Notes: generated by a model from the letters alone, not told the origin. Positions 1 through 64,000 are shown, counted from the first letter of the stretch. The stretch: 64,000 nucleotides of DNA from Amoebophrya sp. A120 (GCA_905178155.1 CAJINV010000003.1:9617979-9681978), one strand, 5' to 3'. Translations and numbers: made by a program.

Positions 1-1984
1 TGGCCGCCATGCCACCACGCCTAGCGCTATGAATACTTACACGGCGGCGCGGCGGCCGAAAAAAATCGCTGCCCAAAGCTGCCCGCCTTTTGGGTTTGTT
101 GAGGCGAAAGGCCTGCGCCGCGTGCGGGCTACCAACCTTGCTGCTTTCAGCGGCGCCGCCATCTTTTTCTTTGCTTTTTCTGTTTAGGCGCCGCCCTCTT
201 TGGGCTGCCCCCTGCGTTAAAAGATCCCGGCTTCGATGGTTGGCAGGCGTTGCGACGTCGAGGGCGTGCAAAAATGGCGCCAATGGCATGCGGATGCGCG
301 GTTTATCTCGTACGGGAGCGCTCCTCAGTACGGGGGCGCTCCTTCTGCCGGCCCCCCTGCGCCGTTTCAGCAGGCGGCAAGCTATAGAATGGCGTCGGGC
401 GTGCTTGCTTGGCGGCAAAGCCCCGGCCGCTTCATAATTGAAAGCCTCCAGCGCCGGCCAAAAAAACACGCCCGGCCGCCTGGGGGCTGCTGGCCGTTTT
501 GCTTATATATGGGGCGGCAAAAAAGGCGCAAGGATGGAACGTCTGCTGCCTCGCTGCATCCTACCAAATAGCTATAGCCGCCGGGGCGGTGGTAGTGAGG
601 TCGCGCCGGGTTTTCTGGCTGGGCGCGTCCGCAGCAAACGCAATTCATAGCCCGCCCCGAGTGCAAAGGCAGGGCCCTACTTTTGTCCCCATCATAGCGC
701 GGCGCATGTCATTAATCAGCATGGCAACACACACCGCAAAAGGCGCGGCGCAAAAATGGCGCCGGGCCGCTGCTGCTTTTAGAGACGGAGCGCCTTCCTG
801 CACGCCATGACCCCGCTAGGGGCTCCACCAGGGCCGGCCCTATGCGCCCCCGAAATCCGGCCCGTAGCATGCGCATTAGCTTCGCTTGCTGCCTGTGGCG
901 GCTTTTGCAGTTTTTCTCTTTTATGTCAACGCCGCGCGTTTTGGCGTGCTCCCCGCAATAGAAATGGCCGCCCTTTGCGGCCGGCTTTGCGACCTCCAAA
1001 AGTGGGCAAAAACGAGGCCAATGCATACCATGGGGCTCGCGGCATGTGGATTCGTAGCATTTTCTTGGCGCACCTTTTTGGGCGCCCCAAATCGGGGGAA
1101 GCAGGTGCGCCGGGCGCCTCAGGGCGGCGCCCTTTTTGCCGGCCCCCTGCGTCGTTTTATCAATCGGCAACCGATAGAATTCGCGCGGGCTTGTTTGGTA
1201 TCAAAGCGAAAGCCCTGACCGATTGGCGGGCGGAAGCTTTTTTTTACATCCAAAAACGCTTCCGGCCGATTGCAAACTTGCTGCCGTTTTGCGCGATGGG
1301 CGGCGAAAAACCCTCCCTGGCTAGAGCCGTTCGGTGGCCTCAATGCATGCAACTCTGCCAGCCAGCCTCCGTCTGAGGGCGGCTGCTTTTCTCGATCCTT
1401 CGCGGGCCCCTTCCCGGCCCGGGATTGGGGGGTAGGGTTCACGACATTGCCGGCGCGCGGGGGGGTCTCTTGGATCTGCTCAATCCAAGCTGTGCCGCAA
1501 CGGCATGGACTTCGGGCGTGCTTTTGCGGCAGGCACCAGGCAGACCTGCAGGCCCGGCGACTACTTCCTCGCGCCGGCCTTCGTGGCAGGCCGCATGGTC
1601 TCGGGCCCGACTCGCCCCCCTACTGGCGGCCTGTTCCCCGCTGCGCCCCTCGGGGGGGGCGCCCTCCTCGTGCGTATGGAATGGCGCAACTCGTGTGGCG
1701 TGCGTGCCCTATGAGTGGGGAGCCACCTCACGGACGTACACGCCGCAGCCGATTAGACTCCGGATATTGCATTTGGTATGGTGGGAGAGGGTTTGTGCCC
1801 ACATCAGAAGCTCCCCAACCTGAAAACGAACTTCTTCCGGAGCTCTCTCTCAATTACAAGCGCAATATATAATGATAAAACTACTCAGAAATAACGCGAG
1901 GCCTATCTGTACCAGACAGAGGAAAAGAAAACCGAAGCGGCAGCAACGCGCCCCTCGTTTGCACTTCCGGAGGTGTTCGATTTG

Positions 1985-4006
1985 TCATGACTGCCATGGC
2001 TTATTTTCCTTCCTGATAATTGCAAGCAGGCGCCGAAGCAGAGGCATTCCATTCTCTGCCAAAATGGCGGTCCGGCAAGCGGGGACTTCTGCCAGTATCG
2101 CTAAGGCGGCACAAGCGTGCAGGGTTACGTCAGAAGGCGCAGGAGGAGTATCAGACCAAGCAGACAGTGCGGTTGGCACTGGCAGCACCCCCGCGCTTTC
2201 GACTGCGGCCGCGGCGCCGTACGCTTTTCGCTCTGCCGTCTCGATTGACACGCGCGGGCACGAAATGAGAGCGCCAGCAGTGGCCGACGTGTGGCGATAC
2301 AGAGCGTTTAAGCATGCGAAAGCGCCACCTCCTTTCAAAATGCCTTCTCTGTTCAACGGATCGGCGGCCAGGCTACCAAGAACGAACGCGCCGTATGATT
2401 GAATCTTCTCGTCCAAGGCGTGCCGTTCCATCGCGTAAATTAGTGCGGAAACTGTTTCCCCAAGATTTGGCCAGAAAGCGCCCTCATCGGTGTACAGTGC
2501 AAGCAAACGAAATACGTCTCGCGTAGCTTCCAGACCGTGGCTCCCACATATTGCAACCCGTAAGACTTGCAACACCCCATTTCGTACCAGCACCGGCCTC
2601 AAGTCCGGCCTTTTGCTTAAGTCGGCCAGAAGTGCAAGCGCGTGGCTGTCGCTTTCCCCCAGCGACGTCTGTAGGCACTCTGCTATGGCGTGCAGGATTG
2701 AAGACAAATCTTCCTTGGCGATATATTTCCCAGCACCTTCAGCGTCGAATTTTACCATGAATCGGAGAAAATGCAGGGCGTACCGGGATACAGAAGCGTC
2801 GTAGCGTGAGAGAGTCACCAGAGCACTCGGCAATAAAGCCCACAAGTCTGCCAGAAGTGCGCTGCTTCCTGCTCCATCCTCTACTATCTTGGAATTGTCT
2901 GCGAGAATTGTAGCTGCCTGCGCGGCTGTTCGCAAACAAGAAGCCGCGACGTGTCGATCATGGCCTCCGAATTCCGTCAGAGCAACACGAATACCTCGTA
3001 TGCCGTTGCTTCCAGCAATCACGCGTGGTCGCTCCAGGCTAATGGACTGCAGCACAGACGCTCCGTAGCGGATTGTGAACAGGTCCGACGGAAATTTTTC
3101 CATCGCAGTCAGAACGGCAAATAGAAAAGAACCACTGCCGTTTAACAACCAAGAGCGCGGCTGTGCATCCTCAGAGAGCAGGCCAAAGAACCACGAGCCA
3201 TGCCGCTGCACCAACAAGCTCCGTGGGAACGTGGCCATGTTCTTTGCGACAAGGTCAGCCGCCCCCATGCCACAGAGTTGCTTTAGTACTCCGAGCTCTG
3301 ACAAACTTGCAAAGCGCGCTAAAACAAGAAGCAACCTTTCGACGACGGCGACCGCACTTCCGGCATCGCTCAAAATGCGCAAAACCGACCTAAGGCCCAG
3401 GGCGGAGTCCCACACTTCCCAAGCATTCCGCTCGGATTGGGCCGTCCACAATGCCAGGACTCGAGCGCCCTGCTGCTGCGCTTTACCATTTCGCGAGTTC
3501 AAACTTGCGACCGCCTCATCCGAGCGTCCTTTGTAAGCATCTACCAGAAATTGGGGGACGTGCTCATCTGCAATGCCCTCTACCGCCCGAACGAATGGAG
3601 ACAGCTCCTCTCGCTCGACATTCATCAGGGAGCGCAAACTCTGTACCTCAGCCTCGCGGGCCGCTAAGCGCTGAAACAGAATGCCCATCATGTCTGCAGT
3701 CTCCACGGGTGAAAGTCGGACTTCGAATGAAGGCATCGCTGGCAAGTGCGTAGGATCCTCCCGAGCGAGGCGGCGCTCGCGTGCAGTGTGATTTTTGAGA
3801 AAAAGCTGCAGGTCACTGTCCGATTCGAGCAGGACCCGCGACTGCCCACTGACGCCTGTGAAAACAAAGCGCTCCACTGGTCGGCCGAGAATGAACTGGA
3901 AACTTTCGCTCATCGTCCTGGTTAAGGACTCCATACTCCTGCAGCCATCCTCCCCTACTTGCGCTTGGTGGTGGCCGACAAGTGACAGCAAGACTCCGCT
4001 CGCCAT
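1985..4006 (-). CDS. Single-exon armadillo (ARM)-repeat protein with a possible N-terminal PB1-like segment (673 aa)
   Basis: Long ATG-initiated ORF of normal composition. It has repeated ARM-like helical motifs (MATFPRSLLVQRHGSWFFGLL, AMEKFPSDLFTIRYGASVL, AMERHALDEKIQSYGAFVLGSLA, HACAALAILA). RVLLESDSDLQLFL resembles a PB1 acidic motif. The 3' end may be frameshifted or extended. Confidence 0.72.
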   Translation of the reverse strand: MASGVLLSLVGHHQAQVGEDGCRSMESLTRTMSESFQFILGRPVERFVFTGVSGQSRVLLESDSDLQLFLKNHTARERRLAREDPTHLPAMPSFEVRLSPVETADMMGILFQRLAAREAEVQSLRSLMNVEREELSPFVRAVEGIADEHVPQFLVDAYKGRSDEAVASLNSRNGKAQQQGARVLALWTAQSERNAWEVWDSALGLRSVLRILSDAGSAVAVVERLLLVLARFASLSELGVLKQLCGMGAADLVAKNMATFPRSLLVQRHGSWFFGLLSEDAQPRSWLLNGSGSFLFAVLTAMEKFPSDLFTIRYGASVLQSISLERPRVIAGSNGIRGIRVALTEFGGHDRHVAASCLRTAAQAATILADNSKIVEDGAGSSALLADLWALLPSALVTLSRYDASVSRYALHFLRFMVKFDAEGAGKYIAKEDLSSILHAIAECLQTSLGESDSHALALLADLSKRPDLRPVLVRNGVLQVLRVAICGSHGLEATRDVFRLLALYTDEGAFWPNLGETVSALIYAMERHALDEKIQSYGAFVLGSLAADPLNREGILKGGGAFACLNALYRHTSATAGALISCPRVSIETAERKAYGAAAAVESAGVLPVPTALSAWSDTPPAPSDVTLHACAALAILAEVPACRTAILAENGMPLLRRLLAIIRKENKPWQS

Positions 4007-10208: not shown

Positions 10209-10295
<87 letters not shown>

Positions 10296-10296
10296 T
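10209..10296. repeat. (GCGT)22 microsatellite
   Basis: Perfect tetranucleotide run read directly from the sequence. Confidence 0.97.
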
Positions 10297-14434: not shown

Positions 14435-14439
14435 CTTTC

Positions 14440-14785
14440 TGTTGGATAGATCGGAATATCAAATGACCTAGTGACGATCAGAAACACAGCGCGACGCAAA
14501 TCACGATGTAAATCTGGTCTGATGTCAAATCTCTTGGTCTTGTACAGACCGGCGATCTGAAATCCATGATCCTCCTCCTTAGCCGTAGCCATCCTGTTTG
14601 TCATGCATATTGTCCATCCTCTTGATATCTCATCACACCCCTGCAGGTTGCGACTAGTACCCCTACTAGTACGTCTATCATCAGTAAGCTCAACACCGTG
14701 CTACGTAAGCACTTAGTACTGCTAGCACTTGTTCACGTCGTGTTTACCCGCTTACTGTCTTGATCGTGCGTCTAGGTTTCTAACA
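14440..14785 (+). repeat. 5' LTR (346 bp)
   Basis: TGTTGGA...TCTAACA. Differs from the 3' LTR by 3 substitutions and one 4-bp indel. Confidence 0.97.
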
Positions 14786-14814
14786 ATCTAGTCGCACCTT
14801 TATTCAGCCAAAAT
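14786..14814 (+). promoter_or_regulatory. Putative non-canonical primer-binding site
   Basis: Directly follows the 5' LTR and lacks TGG. Its reverse complement TGGCTGAATAAAGGTGCGACTAGA resembles the D-arm to anticodon of a tRNA-Ser(AGA). Confidence 0.5.
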
Positions 14815-15022
14815 TTATTAGTTTTCTTGTTTAGAAAACTTGCGCCTGCATTACAAATTTTTACTGATTTTCTTGTGTAGAAAATTTGAAAAACAGTCAC
14901 TACATCTTGTAAGATTTACTTGTACAATTTCAGAGCTAGCATTACAAATTTGAACGTATTTGTTGAAAACGCACCCCCACAACTTTAGGAAGTTTATCTG
15001 CAAAATTTAGAAAAGAAATTAA

Positions 15023-16105
15023 ATGCCATGCAGACATTTTGGTGCTAGTTGCGTAGCTAGAGAACTTGGAAAGCATCGAGATTTGTGCATTTTAGGCGCG
15101 AAGTGTTACGGCTCCAAAGGTTGGAACGTTGAAGACCTTAGCGACCCACAATTTGCAAACTATTTCCACAATCTCGATTGGGATACAAATTGGGAATTTG
15201 TATTTAAGCGCGATTATTGTTTTCTTTTGAACACAATGGTCGACACTAACCAGGTGGAAAAGTACTCTATTCCGCCTTACGACGGAAATCCGAAGGGATG
15301 GTCGGACTGGCGGTTTAAGGTGCAAGCCTTGTTGCAGATGTTGGGGATCTTGACACTGATCGACAACTTCTTGAAAACGCCTTCTATTGACGGATGGAAG
15401 GACGACACGAGGGCCATCGGTGCGCAGTTCTTCGCTCGCTTGTGCGTGGCGTTGACTGGGGACGCGCTGGAGGTCGTGAAGAGCAAGACAGTCGCTTGCA
15501 TCAGTACGGCTTGGGGTGCGTTGTTGTTGGAATTCGATAAGCGGACCAAATTCGCTCGAATGCGGTCGCTTAAGGATTTACTAACCACCCGGAAAGACAA
15601 AGACCAAACGGTAAGGGAGTTCGTTCAGCGGAAACAAAACATCTTTCGGGATGAGCTGGGCGGTGAAGTCTTCCGCAGCGAGTTGATGACTTTCGGATGC
15701 TTCTACAACCTCGGGAACGCCTACGATTCATTTATCATGCCGCACGTCATCCAGGACAAGCCGGACAGTGATAATTTGTTGAAGTTGGCGGAGGAGTGCG
15801 AATCCGTCTTGAAAGACGGGGGCACCGAAGAGGACACCGCAAAGCCCGCTTCTCTCAACTTGACGCAGGCCGATCACAAAGCGATCGCTGCTGAAGTTGT
15901 TGCACAGAAGGGGAAGAAGGGTGGCCGCTGGGTCAACAAGAACCAGCACCCGTACAAGAACAACAACCAGAAGAACAACAAGGGCGGCGGAAAAGGAGGC
16001 AAGGGAGACCAGCAGAAGGGAAAAGGCGGCGGCGGAGACAAATCCAAGATCAAATGTCACAAGTGCAAGCAGCTTGGACATGTTCGTAAGGATTGCCCCA
16101 ACTGA
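15023..16105 (+). CDS. gag: Copia Gag (start may instead be the ATG at 15236)
   Basis: IPPYDG...WSDWRFKVQALL capsid-like N-terminus, G/K/N-rich linker and a C-terminal CCHC knuckle (CHKCKQLGHVRKDC). Confidence 0.93.
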   Translation: MPCRHFGASCVARELGKHRDLCILGAKCYGSKGWNVEDLSDPQFANYFHNLDWDTNWEFVFKRDYCFLLNTMVDTNQVEKYSIPPYDGNPKGWSDWRFKVQALLQMLGILTLIDNFLKTPSIDGWKDDTRAIGAQFFARLCVALTGDALEVVKSKTVACISTAWGALLLEFDKRTKFARMRSLKDLLTTRKDKDQTVREFVQRKQNIFRDELGGEVFRSELMTFGCFYNLGNAYDSFIMPHVIQDKPDSDNLLKLAEECESVLKDGGTEEDTAKPASLNLTQADHKAIAAEVVAQKGKKGGRWVNKNQHPYKNNNQKNNKGGGKGGKGDQQKGKGGGGDKSKIKCHKCKQLGHVRKDCPN

Positions 16106-19100
16106 CGAAGCTGGCCGGGTTCCGATGAGAGTTGTCAAATTTCTCATGCTGCTAAACGTCGAAAAACCGATGCTGATGATGTTCATGCTGTTAAAACAGG
16201 CTCTACTTCTGGTCAAAGTAGTGATGTTGCATGCATTCAAAATCTAAAGTCTCCCTCTATTTACAATGCTACAGCACTCGAAACAAAAACTGATGGTCTT
16301 GAAACAGCACCTATATCCAGTCACAGTGTACTTGAAACAGCCTCTATTTCTAACGAGAACGCATCGAAACGCATGATGAAAAACGCATCTATCCGCCCTG
16401 TTTACGAATCAACCGGCACTACTTGTAAGATTTCCAATGTAAAATTTGAAGTTGATTCCGCTCCTGTTAAGAACGTGAAAGTACCTGAAAAGAACGAAAA
16501 TTCATTACAAAAAATGCCTATTCTGCATGGGGCTTCGCGCTTGTATGATCTCAGCAATTTAAAAAGAAAAGCGAACCCGCATGAGATGGCAAAGAACAAA
16601 AATTACGAGGTGGCAGATTCCGCCCGTAAAGCAGAAGGAAACTGCATGGATTGGACTTGTTTTAACTTGTGCAAGTTTGTAGGGGAATCATGCAACGGGG
16701 TGAAAGATCAGCAAATTTTTGATTTTGCCGATACTCCTAAGGGCTTCACTGTCTTGGTGCATGGTCACCACCAGGGCAGGGACAAGAAAAACGAAAACCA
16801 GGAGGCACAAGACTGGTTTGGTGATTGGTCAAAAGAGCGGGAAAAGGGTCAAACAGATCAAAACGGCGAAAAGTCCGCCGGCGCTGTTTCGTCTTTGACA
16901 TTTGCACTTTTGTCGAAGGGAAACGGGAAAAGCGCCCATGGGATTACCATCCGCCCGGATGGTACTCAAACAACGGCAGTTGTTGATAGTGGTGCCTCGC
17001 ACCACATGACAGGGGACTTGAGCTGTTTTCAGATCGTGTTTTGGGATGATCCAGTAACGTTAACGGTTGCCGACCGAACGTTAGACACTCCCGCCTACCG
17101 TGGTTACTTCCACCATAACTCTTTAGGTTTAATGGGTGGACTATACCATCCTGACGAAAAGTTGTTTTTGGTGTCGGTAAGTCTTTTGAACGACGAAAAT
17201 GACTGCCGGGTAGTTTTTGAGGGGAGAGACGCGCTCTACCTCCAAAAGAAGAAAACAGGTTTCAAAATTCCGATGCGCCGGGACACTTTAACAAATTTGC
17301 CGCAAATAGACTTTGCGTCTCACAGCTTGAGCGAGCTGGATACGGCTGGAGATTTACAAAACGGAAAGAGCCGGGCCGCGTGGTCCGAGCCAGCATTTGT
17401 GAATCTGACTCGTGCCGATCGTCTTCGACAACATGAAAGGTTTGGGCACTTTCATATTGACGGTCTTGAATATGGACGCTGTCCGTTGTGTGACTTAGCG
17501 AAGTCGAGGCAAGAAGGGTGTAAGTCAGAACGTCCGGAGCACTGTAAGCCAAAGGCTTGGCTAGATCAAGTGGATTGGGATCATACCTACGGTTATCCTT
17601 TGGGTCTTGATGGGGAGAAATTTCTTTTGTCAGGGGTGGAGACATTCCATGGCTGGGTAGAGAATTATCCTCACCGGGAAAAGGATGAAGCGTGGAAAGG
17701 TCTGCGTGAGTGGTGTTTAGAAGTTGGAAAGCCCAAACGGGTGAGAAGCGATAACGATCCTACTTTTCGAGGCGAGAAAAGTGACTGGAGAAAGTATTGC
17801 TTGAAGCAGAGTCCTCCGATCGAGCCAACTACGTCTGCGCCGTTCACGCCGCAACGTAATGGAGTCGTGGAACGGTGGAACCAAACTTCGAAAAATGCCT
17901 TGCGGGCGAATATGATCGGGGTCGATCCTCGTCTTTGGCCATATTGTTCAAAGTATATAGCCTGGACTTGGAATCGGTTAGCCCGGAAAGAGCAAAGGAG
18001 TCCATTTGGAAAAGTTCACGATCGCGCGCCTTCGCTCAAGTATTTCAAGAAATTCGGAGTCCTTTGCTATGCTCGGAAGCACGTTACGAAATCGACGGAC
18101 TTAGGTGCGCTCGATGTTCGGTACGAACGTGGAGTATTCTTGGGGTATTCGAAGAATTCCCGTTATTTAGTGGGTGTTTGGCGTGACGACAAACGAACGA
18201 AAGTCGGGCTGAAGTTCACTGTGATCGAAAATAGATCCTGCAAGTTTGACGAATCTTGTACGATCGCCGACATTGACGATCTTCGCGAAAAGAACCGTGG
18301 AGCCTTTGCACCCTTTGCCGCACCCGACAAATTGTGTGTGTCGAACATGCCTGATCCGTTGGTGGCTCCCTCGGGAAGTCATGAGCCCGATCAGGATGCT
18401 CCGCGTGACCAGGGTGATTCGGGGCCCAATGGGGCTACTGGAGACCAGCAGGTCGAGGAAGGGGGCAAAGCAGTGGAAGGGGGCAAAGAGGAAAGTGTTG
18501 CGCAAGCAGAGGAAGAGGTAGTTATTCCCGAAGCGGAAGAGCTTGACGAACCTCCCGCCCGCCCAAAGCCCAAGGGCGTCAAGAAGAAAAGAAAGCAAAA
18601 GCCGAAGCCTGCAGTCGTTGTCAACAACAAAAAGGGTCGCCCGAAAGGTTCGAAGAACAAACCGGGAAGCAAAAAGCCAGGCCCTAAGCCAAAAGCAGCA
18701 GAAGCTGGAAACGTATTTCAGTTGCCTGATGATTTTGACTTTGGTCGAGACTTGGACGAGTACCATGCCAAGCGCATTGAGGAAGAAGGTGAAGAAGTTT
18801 TTGCTCATGTGGTGCCACTCACCAGAGCGCAGATTCTTCGAGATCCTGATGCTCCGAAGTACATAGAGGCCGACGATGTTGAACGACTCAGACTTTTAGC
18901 AAAAGAGTGCTGGACAGTAGACGAGAAACCACAAAAAGGCGACGAAGTTGCGCCGTCGTGCGTGATCTACACGAAGAAAAGATGTGGAACATACAAAGCG
19001 CGGCTGGTGGCACTGGGAAACTTACAGTCGAAAGAACTCTGTGGCGAAATTTACAGCCCTACCATTTCGCACGCAGCTAGTAGAGCCCTACTTGTTGACG

Positions 19101-20561
19101 CTGCTGCAAATGGAAAACGGATCAAATTTTTCGACATTTCAAATGCGTTCACTTGTGCGAGTTTAGGTGACGAGCGAGTTTTCGTGCGTCTTCCGAAGCA
19201 CTGGAGCACTGATCCGAGAGGTGACGCCGTGCGCCTACTGAAGTCTCTTTATGGTCTTCGAATTAGCCCGCGTCGCTGGTTCGATACCTACAGGAAGACT
19301 TTGAAGGAACTAGGTTGGAAGATGTGCGAACGGGAGCCGGGGTTGTTCCGTAAAGGCGTTCTTACGTTGAGCGTGTACGTGGATGACTGTGTCATGAGTG
19401 GTGACACGGAAGAAATTCTCGACAAAGAGATGGGGAAAATTTTGGACAAATTTCATGGAAAAGTGATCCCGCCGAAAGCGAAACCAGGTGAAAAGGGTTG
19501 CGAAGTTTACGACCTCCTGGGGGCCACTCTGGAATACAACGCATCGAAAAAGACCATGAGGATCCACATGGCAGAGGCTATTGACAGAGTTTTGAAGAAA
19601 TTCAATATGGTTGATTGTCGGGGAGTTGCTACGCCTGTACTTCCTGGAAGACAATTGCCAGAAATTCAGACTACTGAAGTTGATACTTCTGCACCGGGAA
19701 CGAAATTCCCACTGCGAAGCCTCGTGGGTAGCCTGCAGTATATCGCTTGTATGTGCAGGGTAGACATTGTCTACGCGGTGCAGCGTGTTGCAAGAGAAGT
19801 AGTAAATCCGACACCCCAAGCGGTGAAAGCAGCAAAACGGATTTTGGCCTACTTGAAAGCAACTCGAGAAATCGGCTTAGAATACTCGCCAAAAGCTGAA
19901 GAAGATTTTCGCACGGTTTACACCAAAGTGACGAAGGAGGCTAATCGGGATTGTCCTGATTTGTGTGCTTTCAGCGATAGCGACTTTGCAGGGTGTACAG
20001 TTACACTGAAGTCCACCAGCGGTAGTATCCTGTATTATCGTGGTTGTCCAGTCGCTTGGTCGTCAAAACGACAGACAGTCCGCGCTTCCAGCACGTGTGA
20101 GGCTGAGTATGTTGCGATCCATGACACGATGGATCAAAATGTGCTTAAGTCAAGGCTGGCCAGATTGGTTTATGGAAACTGAAGGGGAAACGCTTCCGCT
20201 CATTTTCACAGACAATCAAAGTGCGCTAAGTCTCAGCAAGAGCAGTACAATCACTAAGCGCTCCAAACATATTGACTTGCGTTATCACATTGTCCGCGAT
20301 CATTGTCAAGATTTGCGCTTTGTGCCGACAAAAGTAAACAAGGCCGACCCCCTGACCAAGGGCCTGCCTGGTGAAAAGTATTTGTCTCTGTTCAAGACGG
20401 ACCCAAAAGCAGAACTTCACACAGTGCGCGCGCTCCATGTGTCGACTGACCTTCGGCCCATTGTACTAGAGCCCGCTACTGTTATGATGTTGGCTGCGAA
20501 GCTAAGTAAAGCATCTGGATTGACCATCCAGATCGAAGGAAAGCCCTACGACTTTGCCTAG
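16106..20561 (+). CDS. pol: Copia Pol (protease-integrase-RT-RNase H), in frame with gag after one TGA; frameshifted in RNase H by a 4-bp insertion at ~20131
   Basis: Protease VVDSGASHHM. Integrase HERFGH..CPLC with D,D,E residues (VDWD, RSDND, GVVER). RT YKARLVALG, DISNAF, LYGLR, YVDD. RNase H SDSDFAG and EAEY, then in the shifted frame TDNQSA, KHIDLRYH, ADPLTK. Confidence 0.95.
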
Positions 20562-20628
20562 TCGTTGTGCCAAAAAGGAAGGAGGAATGAGGTATATGCT
20601 ACAGGTGAACAATGGTTACTATAGCTTC

Positions 20629-20639
20629 GGAAGGGGGAA
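20629..20639 (+). promoter_or_regulatory. Polypurine tract (PPT)
   Basis: GGAAGGGGGAA directly abutting the 3' LTR. Confidence 0.9.
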
Positions 20640-20989
20640 TGTTGGATAGATCGGAATATCAAATGACCTAGTGGCGATCAGAAACACAGCGCGACGCAAA
20701 TCACGATGTAAATCTGGTCTGATGTCAAATCTCTTGGTCTTGTACAGACCGGCGATCTGAAATCCATGATCCTCCTCCTTAGCCGTTCGTAGCCATCCTG
20801 TTTGTCATGCATATTGTCCATCCTCTTGATATCTCATCACACCCCTGCAGGTTGCGACTAGTACCCCTACTAGTACGTCTATCATCAGTAAGCCCAACAC
20901 CGTGCTACGTAAGCACTTAGTACTGCTAGCACTTGTTCACATCGTGTTTACCCGCTTACTGTCTTGATCGTGCGTCTAGGTTTCTAACA
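20640..20989 (+). repeat. 3' LTR (350 bp)
   Basis: Copy of 14440-14785, followed by the CTTTC target-site duplication. Confidence 0.97.
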
Positions 20990-44025: not shown

Positions 44026-45249
44026 CTGTAAAGCGCCATGCCCCCCAAAAATTCTGAACCTTAGGCGAGCGCCGCGGAGAGGCGGAAGCGCGCACTTGCA
44101 TATACTTTGCACATGGTCGCGCGCACTGTTTCGCAAGCTCCGACCGAGGCATGTGAAAAATGTTTTACCTTTGCCTTTCAAAAACTTAAAGGCCGACATG
44201 TTTGCGCTTCCGCTATTGCTGCCTTTGCCTGCAAGCTCTCAACGATCTGAACGCCTCACCAAGTTGGTAGCGAACACATACACAGTGCCGGCGGGCACCG
44301 GGGCCACCCACAAAACCCGCAATCGCCCCGCGTACGTTTGCGGGGCGGTGGCGCCCAGGGTCGGCCTTCGTTCTCCTCGGTCCGCTAGGCGCTAGCGCAA
44401 CACGCTGAATTGGCAGGGCGGGAACGCGAACAAAATGGGGGGGGGGGTTCGCTGCAGACAGGGGCGCCCCGAACCGCGCGGGCAAAAGTAAGAGGGCCGG
44501 GGAGGCGGGGCCTGCCCCGCCCGGGCGACGGAAGGGCGCAGCGGCCCCGCCCCTTGTTTTTTTCCCCGCGAAGCCTCGCGCGGCGGGCGGGCGAGGTCTC
44601 CCCACCCAAGGGGCGGCAGAAGGCTTGCTGCCGGCGCCCCACCCTGCTGCGGCGCAGCTGCTCGCGCAAAGAATGCGAGGCCGGGCCGGCCTTCGCCGGC
44701 AGAATCGGCCTGCCTGTTGCGCGAGGGGCAGCTTGGCGCTCTGCGCGAAGGGCGGAGAGAATACCCAACAGGGCGCGCTCGCTGGCGATCCCGGAGGTCA
44801 GGGGAGGTCGCTCGCCAAATCCCTCCTACATGATGCAGGGGCGCCTCGCGCAGCATCGGGACGCGGGCGGGAGAGGTTGGCAATTTCCCTTTGCGGGTCT
44901 TCGGATTTTTTCGCCCGAGCACGGGGTGGGGGCGGAGAGGCCTCATCGCCGGGAGGGCAGACGGTCGGGTGGCGCAATCGGGGGCGCGCTCTTTTTCTTT
45001 GGCCGCCGCAAAGCCTCGCGCGGAGGGCGGGCGCCGCGGGGGGCGGCCGGCCGAAGGCGGCAGCGGCCCCCAAATAAGCGCAATCGCAGTCGGGGGAGGG
45101 CGCCACCGGGCGGGAGCTTCCACACCCAGCCCGCTCCCACTCTTCCGCTGACATTAGCCGTCGCCGTTTTTTGCGGGGTTTTCGCATTTTTTCGCCGCGC
45201 GACCGGGCCGGCCCGGATCCTCGAACGGTTTGGGGGGCGGAAGCGGGAC

Positions 45250-46060
45250 CCACACGGAGCGTCCTACTCCCGCGGCCGAGCAGATCATGGGCTACCTAGC
45301 AGCAATGCTTTCGATCGACTTCTAACGCGGCCGAGCGCAAATCGTCTCCCCGCGCTGCCTGCAGGCCATTCATCGGTCGTTTTTGCGCAAGTTGCTGCCT
45401 TGCTGACGGGCGACTTCCTCGCCGCTTCCTTGTGCGGCATTTCGGAGATTCCCGTCGCCGCGCGGCTCCTTTAACTGGGACCGGAGGCCGCCACATGCGC
45501 GCTCCGTTTGCAAAACAATATCGCAGAATGCGCACTCCGGTTTCGTGAGCCACTGCGCGCTTGCATTTTGCTGCCAAACTACCGATCTACCCTACACGGA
45601 TGCGCCTCCGCATTCATACCCGGGGGCACGCGCTCGCCGACGCCCTGGCGCCGCTAAGAGTAGTAGAACTTTCCGGAGAGCATGTGGCACCAGACTCGCG
45701 ATGAAATGTTGCCGCGGATATCTTCTGTAGCACAACTTGGCAAGTGCTAGGTTCCCGGTATGGCACGAGTGCTCCAGCAGGGTCCTTTATCATGCGCAAA
45801 AGCTGCGCGCCCAGATGCAGACTGATAGTCACAAAGGCCCGGCCGTAAATGACAGAAGTACGTATCTCGTGTGGCCCTAATTTCGTCGCCCCGCATTTCG
45901 GTGCTTCAGACATTAGCACAACGACGGACACAAACCGCAGGCGGCCCGATTCGATTCGCGAACCCAGACTGCCCCGGCTCGGGGCTCATGATTTTAGGCC
46001 TCATCGGTTGAGGCCCGGTCCGTTTCAAACGATGCATGGCCATTGCCACCAAGTTAAGCT
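45250..46060 (-). pseudogene. Degenerate copia-type reverse transcriptase relic
   Basis: Fragments in the expected order: KISAATF (~DISAAF), QQNASAQWLTK (~KQASRQW), *VAHDLL (~YVDDLL). Confidence 0.38.
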
Positions 46061-48044
46061 CCTGGGCCCGTCCGCCCGGGCAAGCATCACATGGCGAGGA
46101 ATTGCCACGTGCCCACGAGGCGGCTACGCCCTTCAAGCAGAGGCTACGGGGCGCGCAGCCGTTGTTTGCCACTGCTGTGCGCTCGCCTCTTACGCGGCGC
46201 CCTTTACCAATCTCACCACTTCAAGGCAGCCGCCCTTCTCCCACAGCATAGTGGTACAGCGGGGGCCCTGCAATGCCCCAACCTGCGCGCGCGCGCCATC
46301 TAGCGGCGGCCCGGCTTGCTGCCTTTTTGCCGCGGCAAGCGCCGCTCCTCCTGCGGCCCGGCGCGTCGCGCTGGGTGCGCGCCCTTTCTCCAAACCAGAC
46401 ACGACAAGGCAACAAGGGCGGGCCGGCTTTGGTAGTCGGCTAGCCCTGAAGCGCCTGGCTTGGCAGAACTCCGCAGGCCCAAGCAGCTGGCTTGGGCGGC
46501 GAGGGCAGCCAGACAGGCCGTCCTCTGGTAGAGGGGGCCCGATTTTGGGCGCGCGCTTTTCGGGAGATTCGCTTCGGCCGGGGAATACGGTAGCCCCGCC
46601 GAAGCCTCCGGCTCCAAATTGGCCCGCCCTAGCAAATTCTCCAACAACACGAGCCCGCCTCCCGAAGAGGACGCCGCAGGGGTCCTGCGGGGGCGGGCTT
46701 TAAAAAGCAATCGAGGGTCCTCGGCCGTTCGTCCACCCGACCTGCTCTGCTTGCCCCGAACGCACCCCCCCGCCGAGGCGGCCGAGAATCCTCCCCGCCG
46801 GGGTGGTCCCCGGGGAACCGCAGGAAGAACGCCGTGGAACATGGGGGCATTACCCCTCGGGGCCCCGGGACAGGGCACAAAGGGGGCCAACCCGCCGGGA
46901 AACATGGCCCCATGATAGAGGAAACGGGAATCCGCGAAAGGGCGGAGGGCCGCGAGGGCAGGCAGGGTAGTGTCCGTCGGGTGAACGGGCACCCCCCCCC
47001 GGCGGTGGGCCCCGGCAAGGGGGGGCCGAAGCCTGCGCGGGGCGAAGAGGCCCCCGGGAAACGAGCTGGCCCCGAGGACAGGGAGGATTTCTGCTGGGCG
47101 CTGCAGCCTCCGGGGAAAGAAGGCGCCCGCGGGCGCGCGGCGGCCCGCAAAAGGCCCCCGAGACACCGCGACGGCTGCCCCACCATATTTGTCCTCCGCG
47201 GGCGCGCTGCGCGCGTGCTTGCGCCTGCCTTCCCGTGATATGTATAGTCCCCGACCCGCCCGGCGTTCCCGGGCTGGCACAATAGTGCTTGGCGCCTTGG
47301 GCCGCCGGCCGTTCACGCCTCGTTTTTTTTTTGTTGCCCGGCCTGTCGGGCCGGTTGCGCCGCTGCGCGGCCTCGCGTATTCGTGGCAGGGCCCGGGCGC
47401 GCGACCCGCTTCGCTGCTAGAAATCCGGCCCGGGGCAAAGCTCAGACGCGATCGAAACACAGGCGGGGCGGCAGGCGGGCGGCGACGAAGGCAAAGCCCC
47501 CGTGCTCGCGTGCCGTGCCCGGCTGCCCTTCGGCACGATCGGGCGCCCGCCCGTTTAGAATTAGGCGCTTAGGCTTCGGCGCCGCGTTTGCAGCAGCACC
47601 GAGGCTACGGGGCGTGCCGCGTAGCTAGCCCCTTCCGATGCCGCGCGGGCGCGGCGCGCTGACTTCGGGGGCGAGCGCAGCGCGACGCTGCTGGACGGCC
47701 TCCTTGGCTGGCGGCCGGGCGGGGCCCCAAACAAACACTAGGCCTCGGGCACCCCGCGCGCCCAAGCGCTGCTGGCGGGGCAGATTCGCGCAGGTCATGC
47801 CCGCCTCCCCTGTGGCGTGTATCAACAATATCACTGCGGGTGGCCCTTGGCAACTCCCGGGAAACACAAAAAAAGGCCGCATGCCCCATATTTATTGGGG
47901 CCACAGCTTCGGCAGCGCGCGCTGCTTTGGCCGGCCAAAGAAACAGTCGAAAGGCGCGGCCGCCCCCGTCCGGCTCTTCCCAAAACACCAGAAAAGGGCC
48001 GCCCCGGGGAGTTGGGGCCGGCCCCGGGTGCGCGGGCGGGGCGC

Positions 48045-48102
48045 GCTTCCGAAGCTGCGCGCCCGGCTGGTGTGCTTCCGAAGCTGCGCGCCCGGCTGGT
48101 GT
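48045..48102. repeat. Perfect 29-bp tandem duplication GCTTCCGAAGCTGCGCGCCCGGCTGGTGT x2
   Basis: Read directly from the sequence. Confidence 0.93.
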
Positions 48103-51100
48103 GCTGGGTGGCGCCGGTGGCTCCTGGCCAAGGAAGCCGGCCTGGAAGCACTTTCTCCAAGCGGGCGGCCCAACTGTCCAAGCCGCCCGGCAACTGCAAA
48201 CATGCGCTACGGGCGCGAAGAGCACGCAAGCCCTTTGCCTTCGCGAGGGGGGCGGGTGACTTGCTGAACGGCAGGCGTAGTCACATCGCCTTGAAGCCGA
48301 GGGGTGCCGCCGTGGCAGTTATTCCTCGGGGCGCGCTATCGTCCCAGCCGGAACACGCACAAACGCGCTATGCGGAAGATCAGCAGAGCAGCGCCCGGCC
48401 CGGGGCGCGGGCCCGACGAGCCACCACGGGCCAGTGGCTGCCCGTGCTGCGGCCATCATTCATCACTCGCCAAGCGGAGGCTGGCTTCTTAGTGGCACAC
48501 GCGAGACCACTCCACAATTTACCAGGCACGGTCCTTCTCGTTTCTCTGCAGGGTGCGCAGCTTCTGCGGTCCTCACCCTTTCAGTCTCCGAGTATAGAAC
48601 AACAGACCGCAGTGGACCCACTTGCCGCTTGCCGCTGTTTCGCCATGCGCGCGAACGGTTGCGCCGCGGCCCCGGCGTGCACGCGGCCGCGCCTTTGCTA
48701 TTTCGCCGGCCCCCACCTGGGGTTCCAACAATGCTCCACGCGCGAGGCCGCCTACGCGTAGCTGCGCGAGGGCCCCGTGCTGAATATTCGCCTGCGCGAG
48801 CGTGCATATCATGTTTAGGGGGCTGCGATGCTTGCTCGGCTGCCGGGGTGGCGCACGCCGCGAGCTAGCAAGCAAGCGACCAATGGAGGCCGGGCCGTCA
48901 GGGGTCGCGGAAGGCCTTCCGAGGGGGCGGGCGAAGCAGATCAGGGTGGAAGACCCCGCGCACTTAAGACGCGTGGGGCGCATGCGCCGCCGCGCGTTTT
49001 TGGTGCCCCACCAGCCCGGCCCGCTCGGCGCAAATGCGACGACTCCCCGGGGGGCCCGCGAAGACGGCGAGCCAACGCGAGGAGGGGCGCGCCGGTGCCG
49101 GCGCGAAATCGGGTCAACGGGCTGGCTGCGCTATCGGTTGGGCAAACGAAGCCGGCGCGGGTAGTAGCTCTCGGAAGCCTGGAACCCGTTTTCTCGCACC
49201 GCGGAAGAGCCGCGAAAGGCGAGCGCATCGGCCTACGAGGCGGGGCATTGAAAGTTTCCCGCCGGCATTTCCCGACACCAAATTCGCCTCCAACGAATAA
49301 CCTGCCCCCGGCGCAGCCAGACTCCTCGGGATGGCCACCGGCCAGGCCAGTAATAGGCCCGCCCAGGCTACGAACAGCCGCCCCCGGCGGGCTCAAAGCA
49401 GGCGTACCTGGGGCGACTGGGCAACATGGGGGAGCGCGCGCAATTCGGAGAGGCCCGGGCGGCTGCCCGGGCGTGACGAGACAGCCAGGGGCGCCGCCGC
49501 CCGGTGACTTTAGAAGACAAAACCACGAGCGCCACCGTGCGCGCGCTTCGATACCGGATCACGCCCCCTATTACACCCAATCCCAAGCCACGCCGCTTTC
49601 GCAAAAATAGCCCCGCTGGGCTTACAATTTTGGGACCCGGGGCGGCTTTCTTTTTATAATTCCGAGCAAATGCAACACTTCGCACGCCAAGAAGTCCGCG
49701 CGTGACGACCATCCACCAAGCCCCTGCACTGCCAACGCAGCGCTTCCGTGAGAGCCCGGCAAGCGCGGGCGGTCGGCTGCCGAAACTGGCGCCGCCGCCA
49801 AGGATGCGAAAGCATTCCGCCCGCCTTTTTGCGAAGGATGAAAATCTTAGCAACGCCCCGGGGCCCCGGAGTTCTAAAAATCGGCCTGCCGCTTTTGATT
49901 GGGCCTGCCCGGCGCGAGAGGCGCCCTCCCGGTGGGCAACCAATTTCCCAGAGCCGCCAGGCGCTCTCGCCTTCTGCGTTGGCCAGCGTTTTCGCCTTTG
50001 GTTCGTGCGGGGGTGGCGTGCGGGCTGGGGCTGGCAGGTTCCGCGGAGGCCTCTCAAGTGCCTCGCCTTCGGGGCCTTCACAATCTCACTCGAGAGCCCA
50101 AGCCGGCGGGCGTTCACGGAGTGCGCCTCTTCTGCATGCTCTTCTGCGTTGGCATTGTATGGCGCGGCGGGGGATGAAAATGGGGCGGGCACGTTTCGCA
50201 GGCACGCCCCGGAAGCTTGCAGGCGCTTTGGTCTGAAAGCACCTCCGGCTTCGTCGAGACTGCCGGCGGCGCTGCTGCCGGCATCGCCGAAGTCCGCTGC
50301 TGGCACGCTGCGCAACCCTTCGGCGCTAGTGTCGCAATGACAACGGCAAGCGGTTGGATTCGCGGCGGTGTGCTGTGGCATACGATGTCCCGGGCGTCTA
50401 TACTTGTAGAATCCAGCATCCGCTATGCGAAAGGACAACGCTCGCGCGCCATTGTTGAGTATAGAAAGACAAAGATGCAGCGCGGCCTCGCAATATATTT
50501 GTAACGCCAACCAATCGCGCCCGACGGCTGCCACGCAGAGCACTCCCAACCTGCGCGGCGCCGGCCTCTACCTAGCTAGGGCGGACCACATCGGTCGTGC
50601 GGGGGCGGGCTGGGGCTTTTTACTAACTACAGACCACAAACGGCCCCGCCCCGCCCCGCCCCACCGCTTCGCTTATTTGCTTGAGGGGCCCCCGCGAGCC
50701 GCCAGGGCGATTACAACAAACGCACGGGAGCTCCCAAGCCCGCCCCCACATCTAATGCGGGCCCGTCGCCACGCGGGGCACCTGCCCGAATGGCCACGGA
50801 GCCCATTCGCCCCAGGCAAAAAGCCCCCGGAAGCCCCCGGGGCAAGCGCCCGCCCGCCGTACCTTTGCCGCGCCCGCCGGAGCGGCGGCGCAGCGCGGGG
50901 GGCATCCGGGGTCGCGGCGCGGGCAGTCTTTCCTTTGCGAGCGCAGTGCCGAATCTCCGCCCCTTCGAGAAGGCATACGCGACCGGGGCCAAACACGCTG
51001 GGCGCCCGACGGAAGCGTCCGCGCGCCCACCCTGCCGGCAGCCTTGCGCCGTATTTCCCAAGGCCGGCCGACCGCGCACCCCCCCTGGCAGATTCAGGCC

Positions 51101-54100
51101 TGCGGCGTTCTGCGTAGCGGGGGCACCCCAAGCATTCCGCCAGGACTGGGCGCCCCCTCCAGGACAACAAACGACGCATGGGCCCCGGCGATCGGTTGTG
51201 GTGTATGCGCGCGCGCCAGTGGTCCTCGTGCCGAAGCGGCGTCCGCGCCCGGCGTTCTTTAGGTCGAAGGGCCGCAAGTACCGCCCCCCGCCGCGGCAAT
51301 GGGGCTGAAAGCGGTGGCGCCTCCATTGCTGGCCTGGGCTAGCGGGGTCGACGTATCCTCTTCTGCGCCGGCGCAGAGCGCGCCCCGGCCTGTTCGGGGG
51401 CCCTTTTCCAGGCGTGGCCCATGCGGAAACAGGGCAACGCCCCTTGCTCAAGGTATGGGGCCCCCCGCCCCCCCGCGGGGGCGGCCCGGGGTCGGCCGCG
51501 TTGCCTGCATGGGCGGGCGCCGCATCTCGGTGCGCCGGCTGCTTCTTGGCTTTGCCTCTCGGGGCGCGCGAGCTTGTGGCCGTTGCGCCGCGCAGGGCCG
51601 GGCCGCCGGCCGCGAATCAATCGCGGCCGCTTATGCGCCGCTTCCAAGCCTATCCTTCTGGCTGCGTGTTTTGATTGCGCCTGCCCTACCGCCATGGCGG
51701 CCGAAATTGCTCGCAGCAACCGCGGGCCAGCTCACCAACACACTAGGCTCCGCGAGACAAAATCCGCAGAGAGTGCCTCCGGGCGCCCGAATTCCAGAGG
51801 CCGAATCGTCGGGGCTATCGCAAGAAGCCGCCGCCGATGAAACATTCGTGGTCGGCGAGCGACATACCATGAGCGCCAATCAGCAAGACGCGACGCGCCG
51901 ACACGGCCAGCAAACGAAGCTCCCGAGTGTGGTAGCCAAATACAGAGCTCGCGCTTGCTTCTTTTTGTCCTGGCTGTGGTGCGGCGGCGTTTCCTCTGGG
52001 ATACCCGCTCCAGCATATTCATCAGAATGGTGCCTGTAAATATATTTATACTCTATTCGCTACTTCCTGCCGCCGTGGCCGTTTCGCCTTCTCCTTTTTA
52101 TCTTTGCAAACAGGTGCCCGATATACTAAGCACAGGCCGGGTGGGCGATCCCCCGCGCGCGAAACACGTAGAAAGACGGGGGCCGGCCGTGCGGGCCGCG
52201 GGGCGGCCTTTAGCCGCCAAGCAGCTGCCGATCATGCCTGTCTCCAACAAAAGCCACGAAAGGCATGGGGCCAGCCGGTGGCCAGGTTGGCGCCCGCAGG
52301 CGCTATACGGGGAAGGCTGCTTTCTCAGCGCAGGGCGGCATGCATGGGCTTGCTTGGCCGCTAAGCAAGGCAAGGCGGCGCTGCGAGGGGGGCAAAAGGG
52401 GTCGCACGGTGGGGGGAATGGCTCTGAGGTACTTACCGGGGAAACTAACAGGGCAGACTGGCCCGCGGTGTTGGAGGGCGAAAAGCCGGCCGCCGGGAAG
52501 ACGCCAGAATGGCCACCGCTGCCTGCCAGCAGGCCGGGCGGCCCGGGGTGCAAGCAAGCCGGCATACCAGCTAAGCCGCTCGCCCCAGCGGTGGCGCGCG
52601 CGCCTCGCGCTGGCAACAGGGTGCGCCGCGACGACCGCGCACCGGCGCCAACAGGGTGGGAAGGAGAAGCCGGGGCGGCGGGCGTAGCTGAAGCATTACG
52701 CGTCAAGGCCCGGAAGCCCGAAGCCTCGCCCGGGGACCCCGGACCGAGCGAGCACATGAGCCGGGCCCGCCGCACCACAGGGAGGCCTCGCGGCGCGCGC
52801 TGCACCTTGGCGAGGGCAGCGCAACACAGCTCCACCACTTGCGGACCACCGCGCGGGGATCGGCGGTGCCCTTGTAAGGGGTTGTCGATAGCGTGGGCGC
52901 CTTCGCCTGCGCGGCTGTCTTCCTGCGGCCGGCACCGGGCGCGCGGCCTTTCCCTCCGTCGCCTACAAATGCCATACGGGCCCCACGGGCTACAAGGCGG
53001 CCCCGCTGGCCGGGGGCTTCTTTTCGCGGCGGCGCGGCGAGCAGGGAATCTTTGGCGGGGGAAGGCTCGAAAAAGCTCCACCGGGCTGCCGCGCGGCGGC
53101 CGCCGCTTCGCCGGGCCGGGGCGGAATAGCAGGCCACTAAATGAGTGCCCCGAGAAAAGCAGGGCGCGAGCACGAAGGGCGTCGCTGGTGGAGGCATAGC
53201 ACGGGCCGCTTTGGGTTTGGGCCGGGGCCAAGGCAAGCAGGCGCGTTCGTTGGGACCTGCCCCCGAAAGAGCAGGCCCGCGCTTCGATCGGGAAGCAGCC
53301 CGGACTGCGAGTTTACCTGCGTCACCCCCCCCCTCTCGCACCCTCGTCCGATCCATTCTTGATCTTTCAATACCGCGGACCGACGCAATTGCATTCGAGC
53401 AAGATGGATCTCGGGCGCGACGGCTCGCTTCGCCCGCTCCCCGAACAAACCAGGCTGTTGCCGCGGGCGGAAATTTGAACCGGATGAACCGCAGGCCCCG
53501 GACTGCCGAAACGCGGCCCCGGGCTTCACACACCGCTACGACGCCCGCCGGCGCTGGGCGCCGGCTGCTGCGGTTTGGGCCGGGGGGGCAGAGCGGCCGG
53601 CAAGGCCCGCACCGGCCTCCGCTGCCCTGCGGACCCTGCGCAAGTGCAGGGCAGCGCGCCTTTCCACCGGGGGCCACCAAGAGCAGAAGCGCGACCCTTT
53701 TCGCCGGGTCTTCCACGCACCTCCTGCTCGCCCCCCCCGCCCCCGCGCCGCGCGGAGAAAACGCACGCCCGCCCCCGGTCCGCAAAGGCCTTCGTTTTTT
53801 CTGCGCGCGCAATTTGCTGCGAGTTGCGCGCGCAGAAAAGCCAAGGGCGCGAAGTGGCCAAAATCGCCAGGGCCGGAGCCGCATCTACTGCGCCCCACAG
53901 CCGCGGCGCCTTCCTTGAATCTGGCGAAGGAAGACGAAGGAAACCGCGCCGACTTACTTTCGGGGAAGGGCCGGATGGAAAGGTCCGGCGCGGTCCCCGG
54001 CGGCGATCCGCCGCTAGTAGACTACTAGCGGCGGACCGCCGCTGGTAGATTACTGGCGCTGCGATACTGTAGCGCAGCGCCTGTTGTGCGGCCGCGGAGG

Positions 54101-54589
54101 CACGCGACCAGGTCCGGAAGGATCTTGCTGCCCGCCGGCCCCGTCCTACCACAATGGATACTGCTGCCCGAATATATAGGCCACATCTCGGCGGCCCGGA
54201 GCGGGGCCACCAGAAAATAGAAGGCGCGAAGCCCCGGGAGAATGAAATGCCACCAGCGGCGCGAGAGCATTCCTGCCACCTTCCCAATGGCGCGGGGCGG
54301 CGTCGCTAATCCGCGCGCCAGTAAAGGCAGTTGGCGCCCGCGCGTGGCCTTCTGCGCGCGGGCGCGCCAGGCGCGGTTCGTGCGGAAGGCTTGCGCGCCC
54401 GCGCAGACTGGCCGGCTACCGGCGCGGCTGTTCAGTCACTTGCCTGGCCCCAGCCAAGCAAACAACCTCGCGGACAGGCCGAAGCCTGTGCGCCGGATCT
54501 GTTCCGTCCGTGCGGGCTTCCTTGGCCGGCCTGCGCCGCCTGATGTTTTTCTTTGTTCGCCGGATTTTGCCCCTAACGCTTTTGGGCCG

Positions 54590-63300: not shown

Positions 63301-64000
63301 GTCGGCTGTTTCTTTGTGTGTTGTGGCCGTCCTGGGAAGGTTGGAGCACAAACGCACGCCCCCGGCCGCCTTCCTGTTCTCGGCCGGCCTCCCGCCGGTC
63401 GAACGTCCCGTGGCCAGCAGGCAGCTGCTTGCCAGTTCAGTCCGTGGTTGGCACATTGGGGATGCGCGCGGGCAACCGGCTCGAACTGGGCCAATGGAGA
63501 ACGCACTGGCCCTCGAGCGTGCCTGCTGTGCTGCCTTCAAAGCACGCGCCGCGAGGGGAGCGCGCCGCTCCCTTCTGACCCCGCGAAATCTGCGACCCCG
63601 TCCGTCACTGGGGGCGCCGCAGCAGGCTGCGCGTGCCGCGGTTCTTCTCGCCACTCCACCAAGCGCTGCAAGCCTGCTGGCACTTTGGCCTCCCGCCCGG
63701 TCATTTTCTTGTCCACTATCACATACCGCCAGCGGAGGCGGGGCAGCGGCCGCTCGCTCTGAATACCACGGCCACAGCGGCCCTATCGCGCTACCTGGAA
63801 AGGCCCTCGCCGATTTTCTTCTTGCGGTGCACAGAGTGTAGCTGCCGCCTTTCGCTTCAGGTAATAAGCCGGATGGTGGTCCAGGTCCCTGCGCGTCGGC
63901 CGTTTTCCTCTATGGAAAACGACACCAACAAGCGCCACCAGTGCCTCTCTCATTGCCGCCCCGCTGCAGAGATGCCAACTACTAGCGCGGCAACCTTCTG

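Follow-up and report, generated by a model that had tools for sequence, protein, structure and literature searches.

The window analysed here, a stretch of 64,000 nucleotides on contig 3 (positions 9,617,979-9,681,978) of the 115.5-Mb assembly of the parasitic dinoflagellate Amoebophrya sp. A120, is divided by two-state segmentation into two kinds of DNA. GC-rich blocks with a mean GC content of 0.62-0.71 occupy 30.8 of its 64 kb (48%), and the other 33.2 kb is of moderate GC, about 0.49-0.55. A preliminary description, made from the sequence alone, had estimated the GC-rich share correctly at about half and had taken it for transposon relics eroded by a genome defence. In the analysis below the erosion of dead transposons toward GC is borne out, and the relic origin of the blocks and the proposed defence are not. 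The GC-rich half is old, unconstrained, mostly single-copy non-coding DNA, which makes up the cores of long introns, and probably some spacers, within a cluster of minus-strand genes. The genes, blocks and transposon of the window are located as follows.

1-1150 and 1301-1750: GC-rich blocks, probably within one long intron of the minus-strand gene with codons 1-668 at 4006..2003 (segmentation and protein mapping)
2003..4006, minus strand: large exon of this host gene, armadillo-like, GC 0.56, GC at four-fold degenerate sites 0.565
4301-6100, 6201-6550, 7351-11050 and 12951-14250: GC-rich blocks with moderate-GC stretches between them (segmentation)
14440..20989, plus strand: young Ty1/copia element, GC 0.48, with long terminal repeats (LTRs) of 346 and 350 nucleotides, TG..CA ends and a 5-bp target duplication, CTTTC
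21001-22450 and 23051-24800: GC-rich blocks; the moderate-GC segment between them holds a satellite at 22830-22990 (segmentation)
45722-45788, 43944-44015, 43711-43788, 41608-41668 and 40962-41085, minus strand: five micro-exons of an expressed ankyrin-repeat gene (RNA contigs)
41669..43710, minus strand: intron of 2042 bp, GT..AG, with a GC-rich core at 41851-43200
44016..45721, minus strand: intron of 1706 bp, AT..AC on the gene strand, with a GC-rich core at 44251-45650 (GC 0.68)
45951..54550: largest GC-rich stretch, GC 0.68-0.70, single-copy in the parts searched, with moderate-GC islands of 100-150 bp at 50401-50500 and 52001-52150
55151-55350, 55501-56600, 56851-57450, 58001-58900, 60701-62000 and 62401-64000: GC-rich blocks (segmentation)

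The open reading frame at 1985-4006 on the minus strand matches an annotated A120 protein (P0001) at 99% identity; amino acids 1-668 of this protein map to 4006-2003, and its remainder lies outside the window. The exons of the ankyrin-repeat gene are 61-124 nucleotides long with a GC content of 0.44-0.56, and when joined on the minus strand they give an open frame with ankyrin repeats. Contigs of a probable RNA run connect 41085 to 41608, 41668 to 43711, 43788 to 43944, and 44015 to 45722. The joints from 41668 to 43711 and from 44015 to 45722 skip GC-rich blocks, and these blocks are therefore intron cores of an expressed gene, contrary to the earlier statement that genes are spared. The next exon sequence of the RNA contig matches at about 50387 (a 20-nucleotide match), in a low-GC island of 100 bp within the largest block, from which it follows that at least 45789-50386 is intronic as well. 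Intron status thus comes from RNA joints for two blocks and from the 20-nucleotide match for part of a third, and is presumed for the remainder. This arrangement reverses the usual contrast between exons and introns, with micro-exons of about 50% GC set among long introns with GC-rich cores, and for gene finding in A120 it makes low-GC islands within GC-rich stretches candidate micro-exons. The intron at 41086-41607 is non-canonical (TA..GA on the plus strand), and two others of this gene are GT..AG. Two raw RNA-seq runs of 2026 with the same species label (X8 and X9) have zero reads on 40301-46300; another strain or stage may have been sequenced, or host reads may predominate in them.

Transposon ancestry of the GC-rich blocks was not detectable. 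A genome-wide DNA search with 7401-11000, 46001-48500, 48501-51500 and 51501-54550 (12.2 kb) returned only the queries themselves, apart from short simple stretches, at a sensitivity with which other queries yielded copies at 71-72% identity. The period-3 signal in the GC-rich blocks was the same as in shuffled sequences, while that of the copia element was strong. In the GC-rich DNA, the 150 longest open frames (29,355 amino acids) matched zero Pfam families, and a Pfam scan of 18 long open reading frames likewise found no family there. Recognizable small repeat families make up about 1.5-2 kb of the GC-rich DNA (about 5%). A search for direct and inverted repeats at the edges of the GC-rich cores in the two RNA-supported introns gave only short, chance-level matches, and among over-represented 6- and 8-mers in GC-rich DNA nothing was recurrent except a (GCGT)n microsatellite. 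A perfect (GCGT)22 array of this kind lies at 10209-10297, within a GC-rich block.

The preliminary description had started from a shortage of TC and GA in the GC-rich DNA, and its hand counts were exact: TC+GA=14 against CT+AG=27 in 1-240, and 35 against 23 in 17821-18060. Pooled, strand-symmetric ratios of observed to expected dinucleotides were calculated for the blocks and for the moderate-GC DNA without the copia element.

AA/TT: 1.79 in GC-rich blocks, 1.27 in moderate-GC DNA
TA: 0.65 in GC-rich blocks, 0.63 in moderate-GC DNA
AC/GT: 0.67 in GC-rich blocks, 0.85 in moderate-GC DNA
GA/TC: 0.79 in GC-rich blocks, 1.02 in moderate-GC DNA
AG/CT: 0.96 in GC-rich blocks, 1.00 in moderate-GC DNA
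CA/TG: 0.99 in GC-rich blocks, 1.08 in moderate-GC DNA
GC: 1.28 in GC-rich blocks, 1.28 in moderate-GC DNA
CG: 1.04 in GC-rich blocks, 1.08 in moderate-GC DNA

The shortage of TC/GA in the GC-rich blocks is genuine but modest, and it is not specific, the depletion of AC/GT being deeper. The ratio (GA+TC)/(AG+CT) is 0.81 in the blocks (bootstrap 0.77-0.86), 1.03 in moderate-GC DNA outside the copia element and 1.12 within that element, and a coding enrichment of GA/TC may form part of this contrast between blocks and genes. In the blocks, G followed by A or T and A or T followed by C are low, while C followed by A or T and A or T followed by G are normal; in keeping with the orientation of these steps, runs of A/T in GC-rich DNA are flanked as C_G in 31% of cases and as G_C in 17%. 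GC-rich segments account for 9% of 20 copia-centred loci taken from elsewhere in the genome and do not have this dinucleotide pattern, so that the pattern is specific to the long-intron blocks rather than a property of any GC-rich DNA.

The direction of base change was read from copia elements in these 20 loci (161 kb); in two of them, L006 and L008, stretches of N 2.2-2.5 kb long adjoin the copia relics. Two families, A and B, were aligned, each with four copies that are 90-96% identical, and isolated sites at which one copy differed from three unanimous others were scored, column by column and without a consensus, as changes on the terminal branch of that copy. In the six non-intact copies, changes from A:T to G:C were found at 235 of 7376 sites and changes from G:C to A:T at 86 of 7625 (0.0319 and 0.0113 per site), a ratio of 2.8, with an implied equilibrium GC of 0.74. 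Without copy L016, whose branch may hold the root and whose polarity is therefore ambiguous, the ratio is 3.2 and the equilibrium 0.76. The AT-to-GC erosion of dead transposon copies that had been proposed is thus confirmed, and its strength suffices to carry these copies to the GC of about 70% seen in the blocks. Per-site rates in the dead copies were 0.0275 for T to C, 0.0097 for C to T, 0.0043 for T to G, 0.0016 for C to A, 0.0030 for T to A and 0.0008 for C to G; transitions and transversions are equally biased (2.84 for T to C over C to T, 2.76 for T to G over C to A). Singletons reach 2-7% of the A/T sites in the copia copies.

The bias is found in dead copies. An intact copy (L019) is balanced, with 17 changes toward GC and 15 toward AT, and 25 of these 32 are at codon position 3, whereas in the dead copies 66 changes fall at codon positions 1 and 2 and 50 of these 66 are toward GC. 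The bias therefore arises after insertion, during decay in place. An independent pair, consisting of the intact copy L020 and the dead copy L010, gave 113:63 (p=2e-4); the dead copies with a bias are L003, L006, L007, L010 and L015. Bulk GC does not differ between degenerate copia relics (0.48-0.55) and intact elements (0.47-0.55); at this age of the copias it is too blunt a measure, and polarized counts were used instead. Editing of retro-element RNA by an ADAR-type enzyme was considered and excluded, as A to G and T to C changes on the sense strand are similar in number (96 and 107).

Little dependence on neighboring bases was found. According to the preliminary description, the changes were specific to the T of TpC; in the dead copies T was replaced by C or G at 73 of 2356 TpC sites (0.0310) and at 162 of 5020 other T sites (0.0323), an odds ratio of 0.96 (p=0.83). 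The sole context effect was a raised rate of T to C after a 5' G (0.0416 against 0.0237 elsewhere, odds ratio 1.78, p=2.4e-4), which agrees with GT/AC being the most deeply depleted dinucleotide in the blocks and with their excess of GpC. The spectrum is thus largely a context-independent one from AT to GC, which the preliminary description itself had listed as an outcome that would count against its model. In the dead copies TT changed to CT at 0.036 and to TC at 0.020, and this difference can produce more CT than TC even if nothing is lost at TpC. The ratio for CpG, at 1.04, gives no sign of depletion, and C to T changes at CpG do not stand out. Gap and permutation tests for clustering and for coordination on the same strand were non-significant in all eight of the copies tested. 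When the measured rates were used in a neighbor-dependent simulation, GC came to equilibrium at 0.76 +/- 0.02, with AC/GT, GA/TC and TA all below 1.

Two further observations had been brought forward for TpC. Between the LTRs of the young copia (14440-14785 and 20640-20989) there are three transitions (14474 A/G, 14690 T/C and 14737 G/A) and one 4-bp indel; the differences at 14474 and 14690 are as had been described, but there are three in all and they are unpolarized. This element sits inside an older GC-rich block, with flanks of 0.63 and 0.72 GC. In the satellite array of the window, where units are in good register, 6 of about 8 variants do fall on a T before C, but two-thirds of the T residues of the unit are in TpC anyway, and neighboring units share variants.

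Two small repeat families have copies both in the GC-rich DNA of the window and in moderate-GC loci of the copia set.

334-502, 797-1313 and 43034-43568, with L005:6985-7520: R1, a repeat family of about 580 bp, copies 65-75% identical
56081-56644, with L004:1-263 and L004:2153-2696: R2, a small repeat family

The reconstructed ancestral nodes of these families are already GC-rich (0.66 for R2, 0.57 for R1). Copies in a GC-rich context nevertheless gain GC, with changes toward GC and toward AT in ratios of 35:18 (797-1313) and 19:14 (56081-56644), and their relatives in the moderate-GC loci do not (17:26 in L005; 7:17 and 11:13 in L004). R1 is rich in strings of the GGGCCC type and in runs of T or A, and its copy at 43034-43568 straddles the right edge of the intron core at 41851-43200.

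On balance, the composition of the blocks probably reflects a location-dependent, GC-biased regime of substitution that acts on unconstrained DNA, whether gene-conversion-like or mutational, and under which old introns are near equilibrium. Under such a regime, A:T to G:C changes in unconstrained resident DNA would become fixed at about three times the per-site rate of the reverse changes, and old intron and spacer DNA would have nearly equilibrated, toward about 70-75% GC. Constraint or youth would keep exons, short introns and recent insertions, among them the copia with its GC of 0.48, near 50% GC. The mechanism would be GC-biased repair or a fixation bias of the gene-conversion type, varying in strength by location, and the absence of a route back to AT by CpG decay possibly helps. 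We infer that the regime seen in the dead copias also made the GC-rich blocks, and that it works through fixation rather than mutation. The equal bias across substitution classes, together with the variation from locus to locus, favors a fixation bias from gene conversion or repair; the excess of T to A changes, the low GC of four-fold sites and the sharp contrast between exons and introns allow for some mutational contribution in non-exonic chromatin.

This behavior has much in common with GC-biased gene conversion and isochores as known from mammals, birds, yeast and many protists, in which unconstrained DNA has an excess of A:T to G:C changes that is equal for transitions and transversions, the strength varies by location, and old non-coding DNA reaches high GC while young insertions lag. 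Unlike those systems, A120 has a contrast on the scale of 100 bp between micro-exons and intron cores of a single gene, its synonymous sites do not follow intron GC, and T to A changes exceed C to G changes. Thus the two main features of the substitution spectrum expected of GC-biased conversion were found, and the agreement of synonymous sites with local GC was not. Overall, the drift looks like GC-biased sequence evolution of an ordinary kind and not like a novel genome defence.

Several observations weigh against a GC-biased regime of this general kind. GC at four-fold degenerate sites of the host genes is 0.52-0.60, against 0.65-0.70 in the adjoining intron cores, and two short introns of the ankyrin-repeat gene have a GC content of 0.40 and 0.51, where a general neutral regime should have raised it; either selection holds these sites back or the regime acts unequally. 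The transitions between GC-rich and moderate-GC DNA lie 70-235 bp from exons, which is sharp for a regional process. Dead copies without bias exist (57:61 for the pair L018 and L004, 16:15 for L009), and the flanks of the biased copia copies are not GC-rich. The simulation from measured rates overshoots the GC content (0.76 against an observed 0.67-0.70) and misses both the excess of AA/TT (1.1 against 1.79) and that of GpC (1.03 against 1.28). T to A changes outnumber C to G changes by 22 to 6, a per-site ratio of 3.8 from few events; this hints at a generally higher mutability of A:T pairs, which pure fixation bias does not predict. The spectrum itself comprises 349 substitutions in two copia families, with bases as in the assembly. 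Finally, we know of no documentation of sex or meiotic recombination in Amoebophrya.

Some of these points would be met by a purely mutational account, in which mutability is intrinsically higher at A:T pairs wherever chromatin is silenced or non-exonic, and erosion, mostly by A:T to G:C transitions, is passive, with neither TpC specificity nor a role in defence; possible causes are a thymine modification (5-hydroxymethyluracil, 5hmU, or an oxidized form pairing with G), its repair, or deamination of adenine. We regard this as rather unlikely overall, although each of the three classes of change at A:T pairs is more frequent than the corresponding class at G:C pairs (2.8-, 2.8- and 3.8-fold), even T to A over C to G, a contrast on which gene conversion should have no influence, and synonymous-site GC falls below that of adjoining intron cores as if exonic chromatin were less exposed. 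The T to A contrast, however, is one of only 22 against 6 events. In Amphidinium carterae and Breviolum minutum, which belong to the same broad lineage, 5hmU is enriched over repeats and transposons and is made by an enzyme of the TET/JBP type (PMC11572971, PMC11071213), but no mutational consequence is reported there, base-resolution mapping of 5hmU in Breviolum yielded no sequence motif (PMC11071213), and the genes of Amphidinium are GC-richer than its genome as a whole (PMC11572971), the opposite of what repeat erosion driven by 5hmU would give. In A120, two long open frames (799 and 1438 amino acids) have matches to Tet_JBP (PF12851), at G000:C1:13511038-13511472 on the minus strand and G000:C9:385277-385516 on the plus strand, and would be candidate thymine or cytosine dioxygenases; the matches score below the Pfam cut-off (30.9 and 25.9 against 34.9 bits), and 5hmU in Amoebophrya DNA is itself hypothetical. 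The specific proposal that a thymine modification like 5hmU (or the repair of it) is denser in silenced non-exonic chromatin and passively erodes transposons and long introns toward GC is improbable. Were it true, the result would be a by-product resembling RIP (repeat-induced point mutation) in reverse, without TpC specificity, in one of the rare eukaryotes with a GC-biased mutation spectrum. A comparably low probability attaches to the idea that the blocks were born GC-rich, as insertions already at 60-70% GC on arrival from which the present pattern is inherited. The ancestral nodes of R1 and R2 and the sharp boundaries within introns, one of which is straddled by an R1 copy, are as this idea would have it, but for over 90% of the GC-rich DNA no relative could be detected in the genome (four blocks, 12.2 kb, searched), and no motif recurs in this DNA beyond the (GCGT)n microsatellite. 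Moreover, repeat copies in a GC-rich context still gain GC over their ancestral node, and dead copias that started out at 0.47-0.55 GC show a measurable rise.

The remaining explanations fit the data less well than the GC-biased regime. Selection for GC-rich long introns, which by self-pairing or by their distinct composition might aid exon definition or the juxtaposition of splice sites, is very unlikely: it leaves the bias of the dead copia copies unexplained, and no conserved motif or structure was found in the blocks by scans for bounding repeats and k-mers (with no shuffle test of structure). The sharp step in GC from micro-exons (0.44-0.56) to intron cores (0.65-0.70), with intron flanks of moderate GC, would suit it, as would the non-canonical splice ends of the ankyrin-repeat gene in a parasite whose introns are mostly non-canonical and whose U1 components are reduced; Farhat et al. 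2021 (PMC7789003) describe introners that form hairpins and the absence of a U1 protein. Still less probable is the model of the preliminary description, a TpC-specific modification or repair of thymine on silenced repeats that converts T to C or G as a mirror image of RIP. Dead transposon copies do drift toward GC, TC/GA is under-represented in the GC-rich DNA, and older literature, as cited in PMC11572971, places 5hmU preferentially in TA and TC dinucleotides. The equal rates of change at TpC and elsewhere, the deeper depletion of AC/GT and LTR differences that cannot be polarized nonetheless speak against TpC specificity, and the repeat targeting claimed does not hold, because the strongest signature lies in single-copy introns of an expressed gene, changes are unclustered and uncoordinated between strands, and some dead copies (L004, L009) are unaffected. 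Fungal RIP, too, degrades transposon copies progressively through a directional transition bias, but it changes C to T, is specific to CpA, is triggered by duplication, and is clustered and strand-coordinated, whereas the changes here are from A:T to G:C, not TpC-specific, scattered, and strongest in single-copy DNA. None of the RIP-like features examined (dependence on duplication, dinucleotide context, clustering, and an effect on all dead copies) was found. The least probable explanation of all is that T to C and A to G singletons are Nanopore base-calling or polishing errors, for example at modified thymines in repeats. The assembly was built from Nanopore plus Illumina reads, according to PMC7789003, and the spectrum was read from its bases, but all classes of substitution are present, the codon-position pattern fits real evolution, and changes at 2-7% of A/T sites are far above the error of a polished assembly. 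In addition, a contig of a separate public run agrees with 40779-46300 at every base, with zero differences across 5.5 kb that include both GC-rich and moderate-GC sequence, so that the GC-rich blocks there are not assembly artefacts.

If the preferred reading of a GC-biased regime is right, composition shifts with age in A120, and the dating of its transposons has to allow for this. A fixation bias would be an indirect sign of recombination and sex in Syndiniales, and a mutation bias a possible link to dinoflagellate base modification. The A120 genome paper (Farhat et al. 2021, PMC7789003) puts repeats at 23.8%, most of them unclassified, and describes non-canonical introns as numerous; as far as its searchable text was covered, an AT-to-GC regime and GC-rich intron cores do not appear, and the term "GC-rich" is absent from its main text.

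Strand asymmetries were seen in the GC-rich introns and in copia copies. In these introns, T exceeds A (by about 7%) and G exceeds C (by about 3%) on the coding strand. Single copia copies are lopsided in A to G against T to C changes, with either sign (15:3, 7:17 and 12:3; loci L006, L015 and L019). Together these asymmetries suggest a transcription-associated component. In mammals, transcription-associated asymmetry consists of A to G exceeding T to C on the coding strand, with an excess of G+T; the intron cores and, with either sign, the individual dead copies are similar in this respect, but that process gives skew and not a large net gain of GC.

Other repeats of the window lie in moderate-GC DNA. 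A repeat of about 450 bp at 11230-11676 occurs in the genome in at least 45 copies that are 72-85% identical, and adjoining it is a 126-bp unit at 11100-11226 with copies at 95-98% identity; the repeats of 11100-11676 look like a family of the MITE (miniature inverted-repeat transposable element) or introner type. The 12/13-bp satellite, with a TCTAAA core and a variable spacer, lies at 22830-22990 in the window and was found again near copia relics at L004:5940-6200 and L009:6420-6665. In L009 it takes the form of an AT-rich 24-26-bp version (GC 0.31), and the array in the window is the GC-richest.

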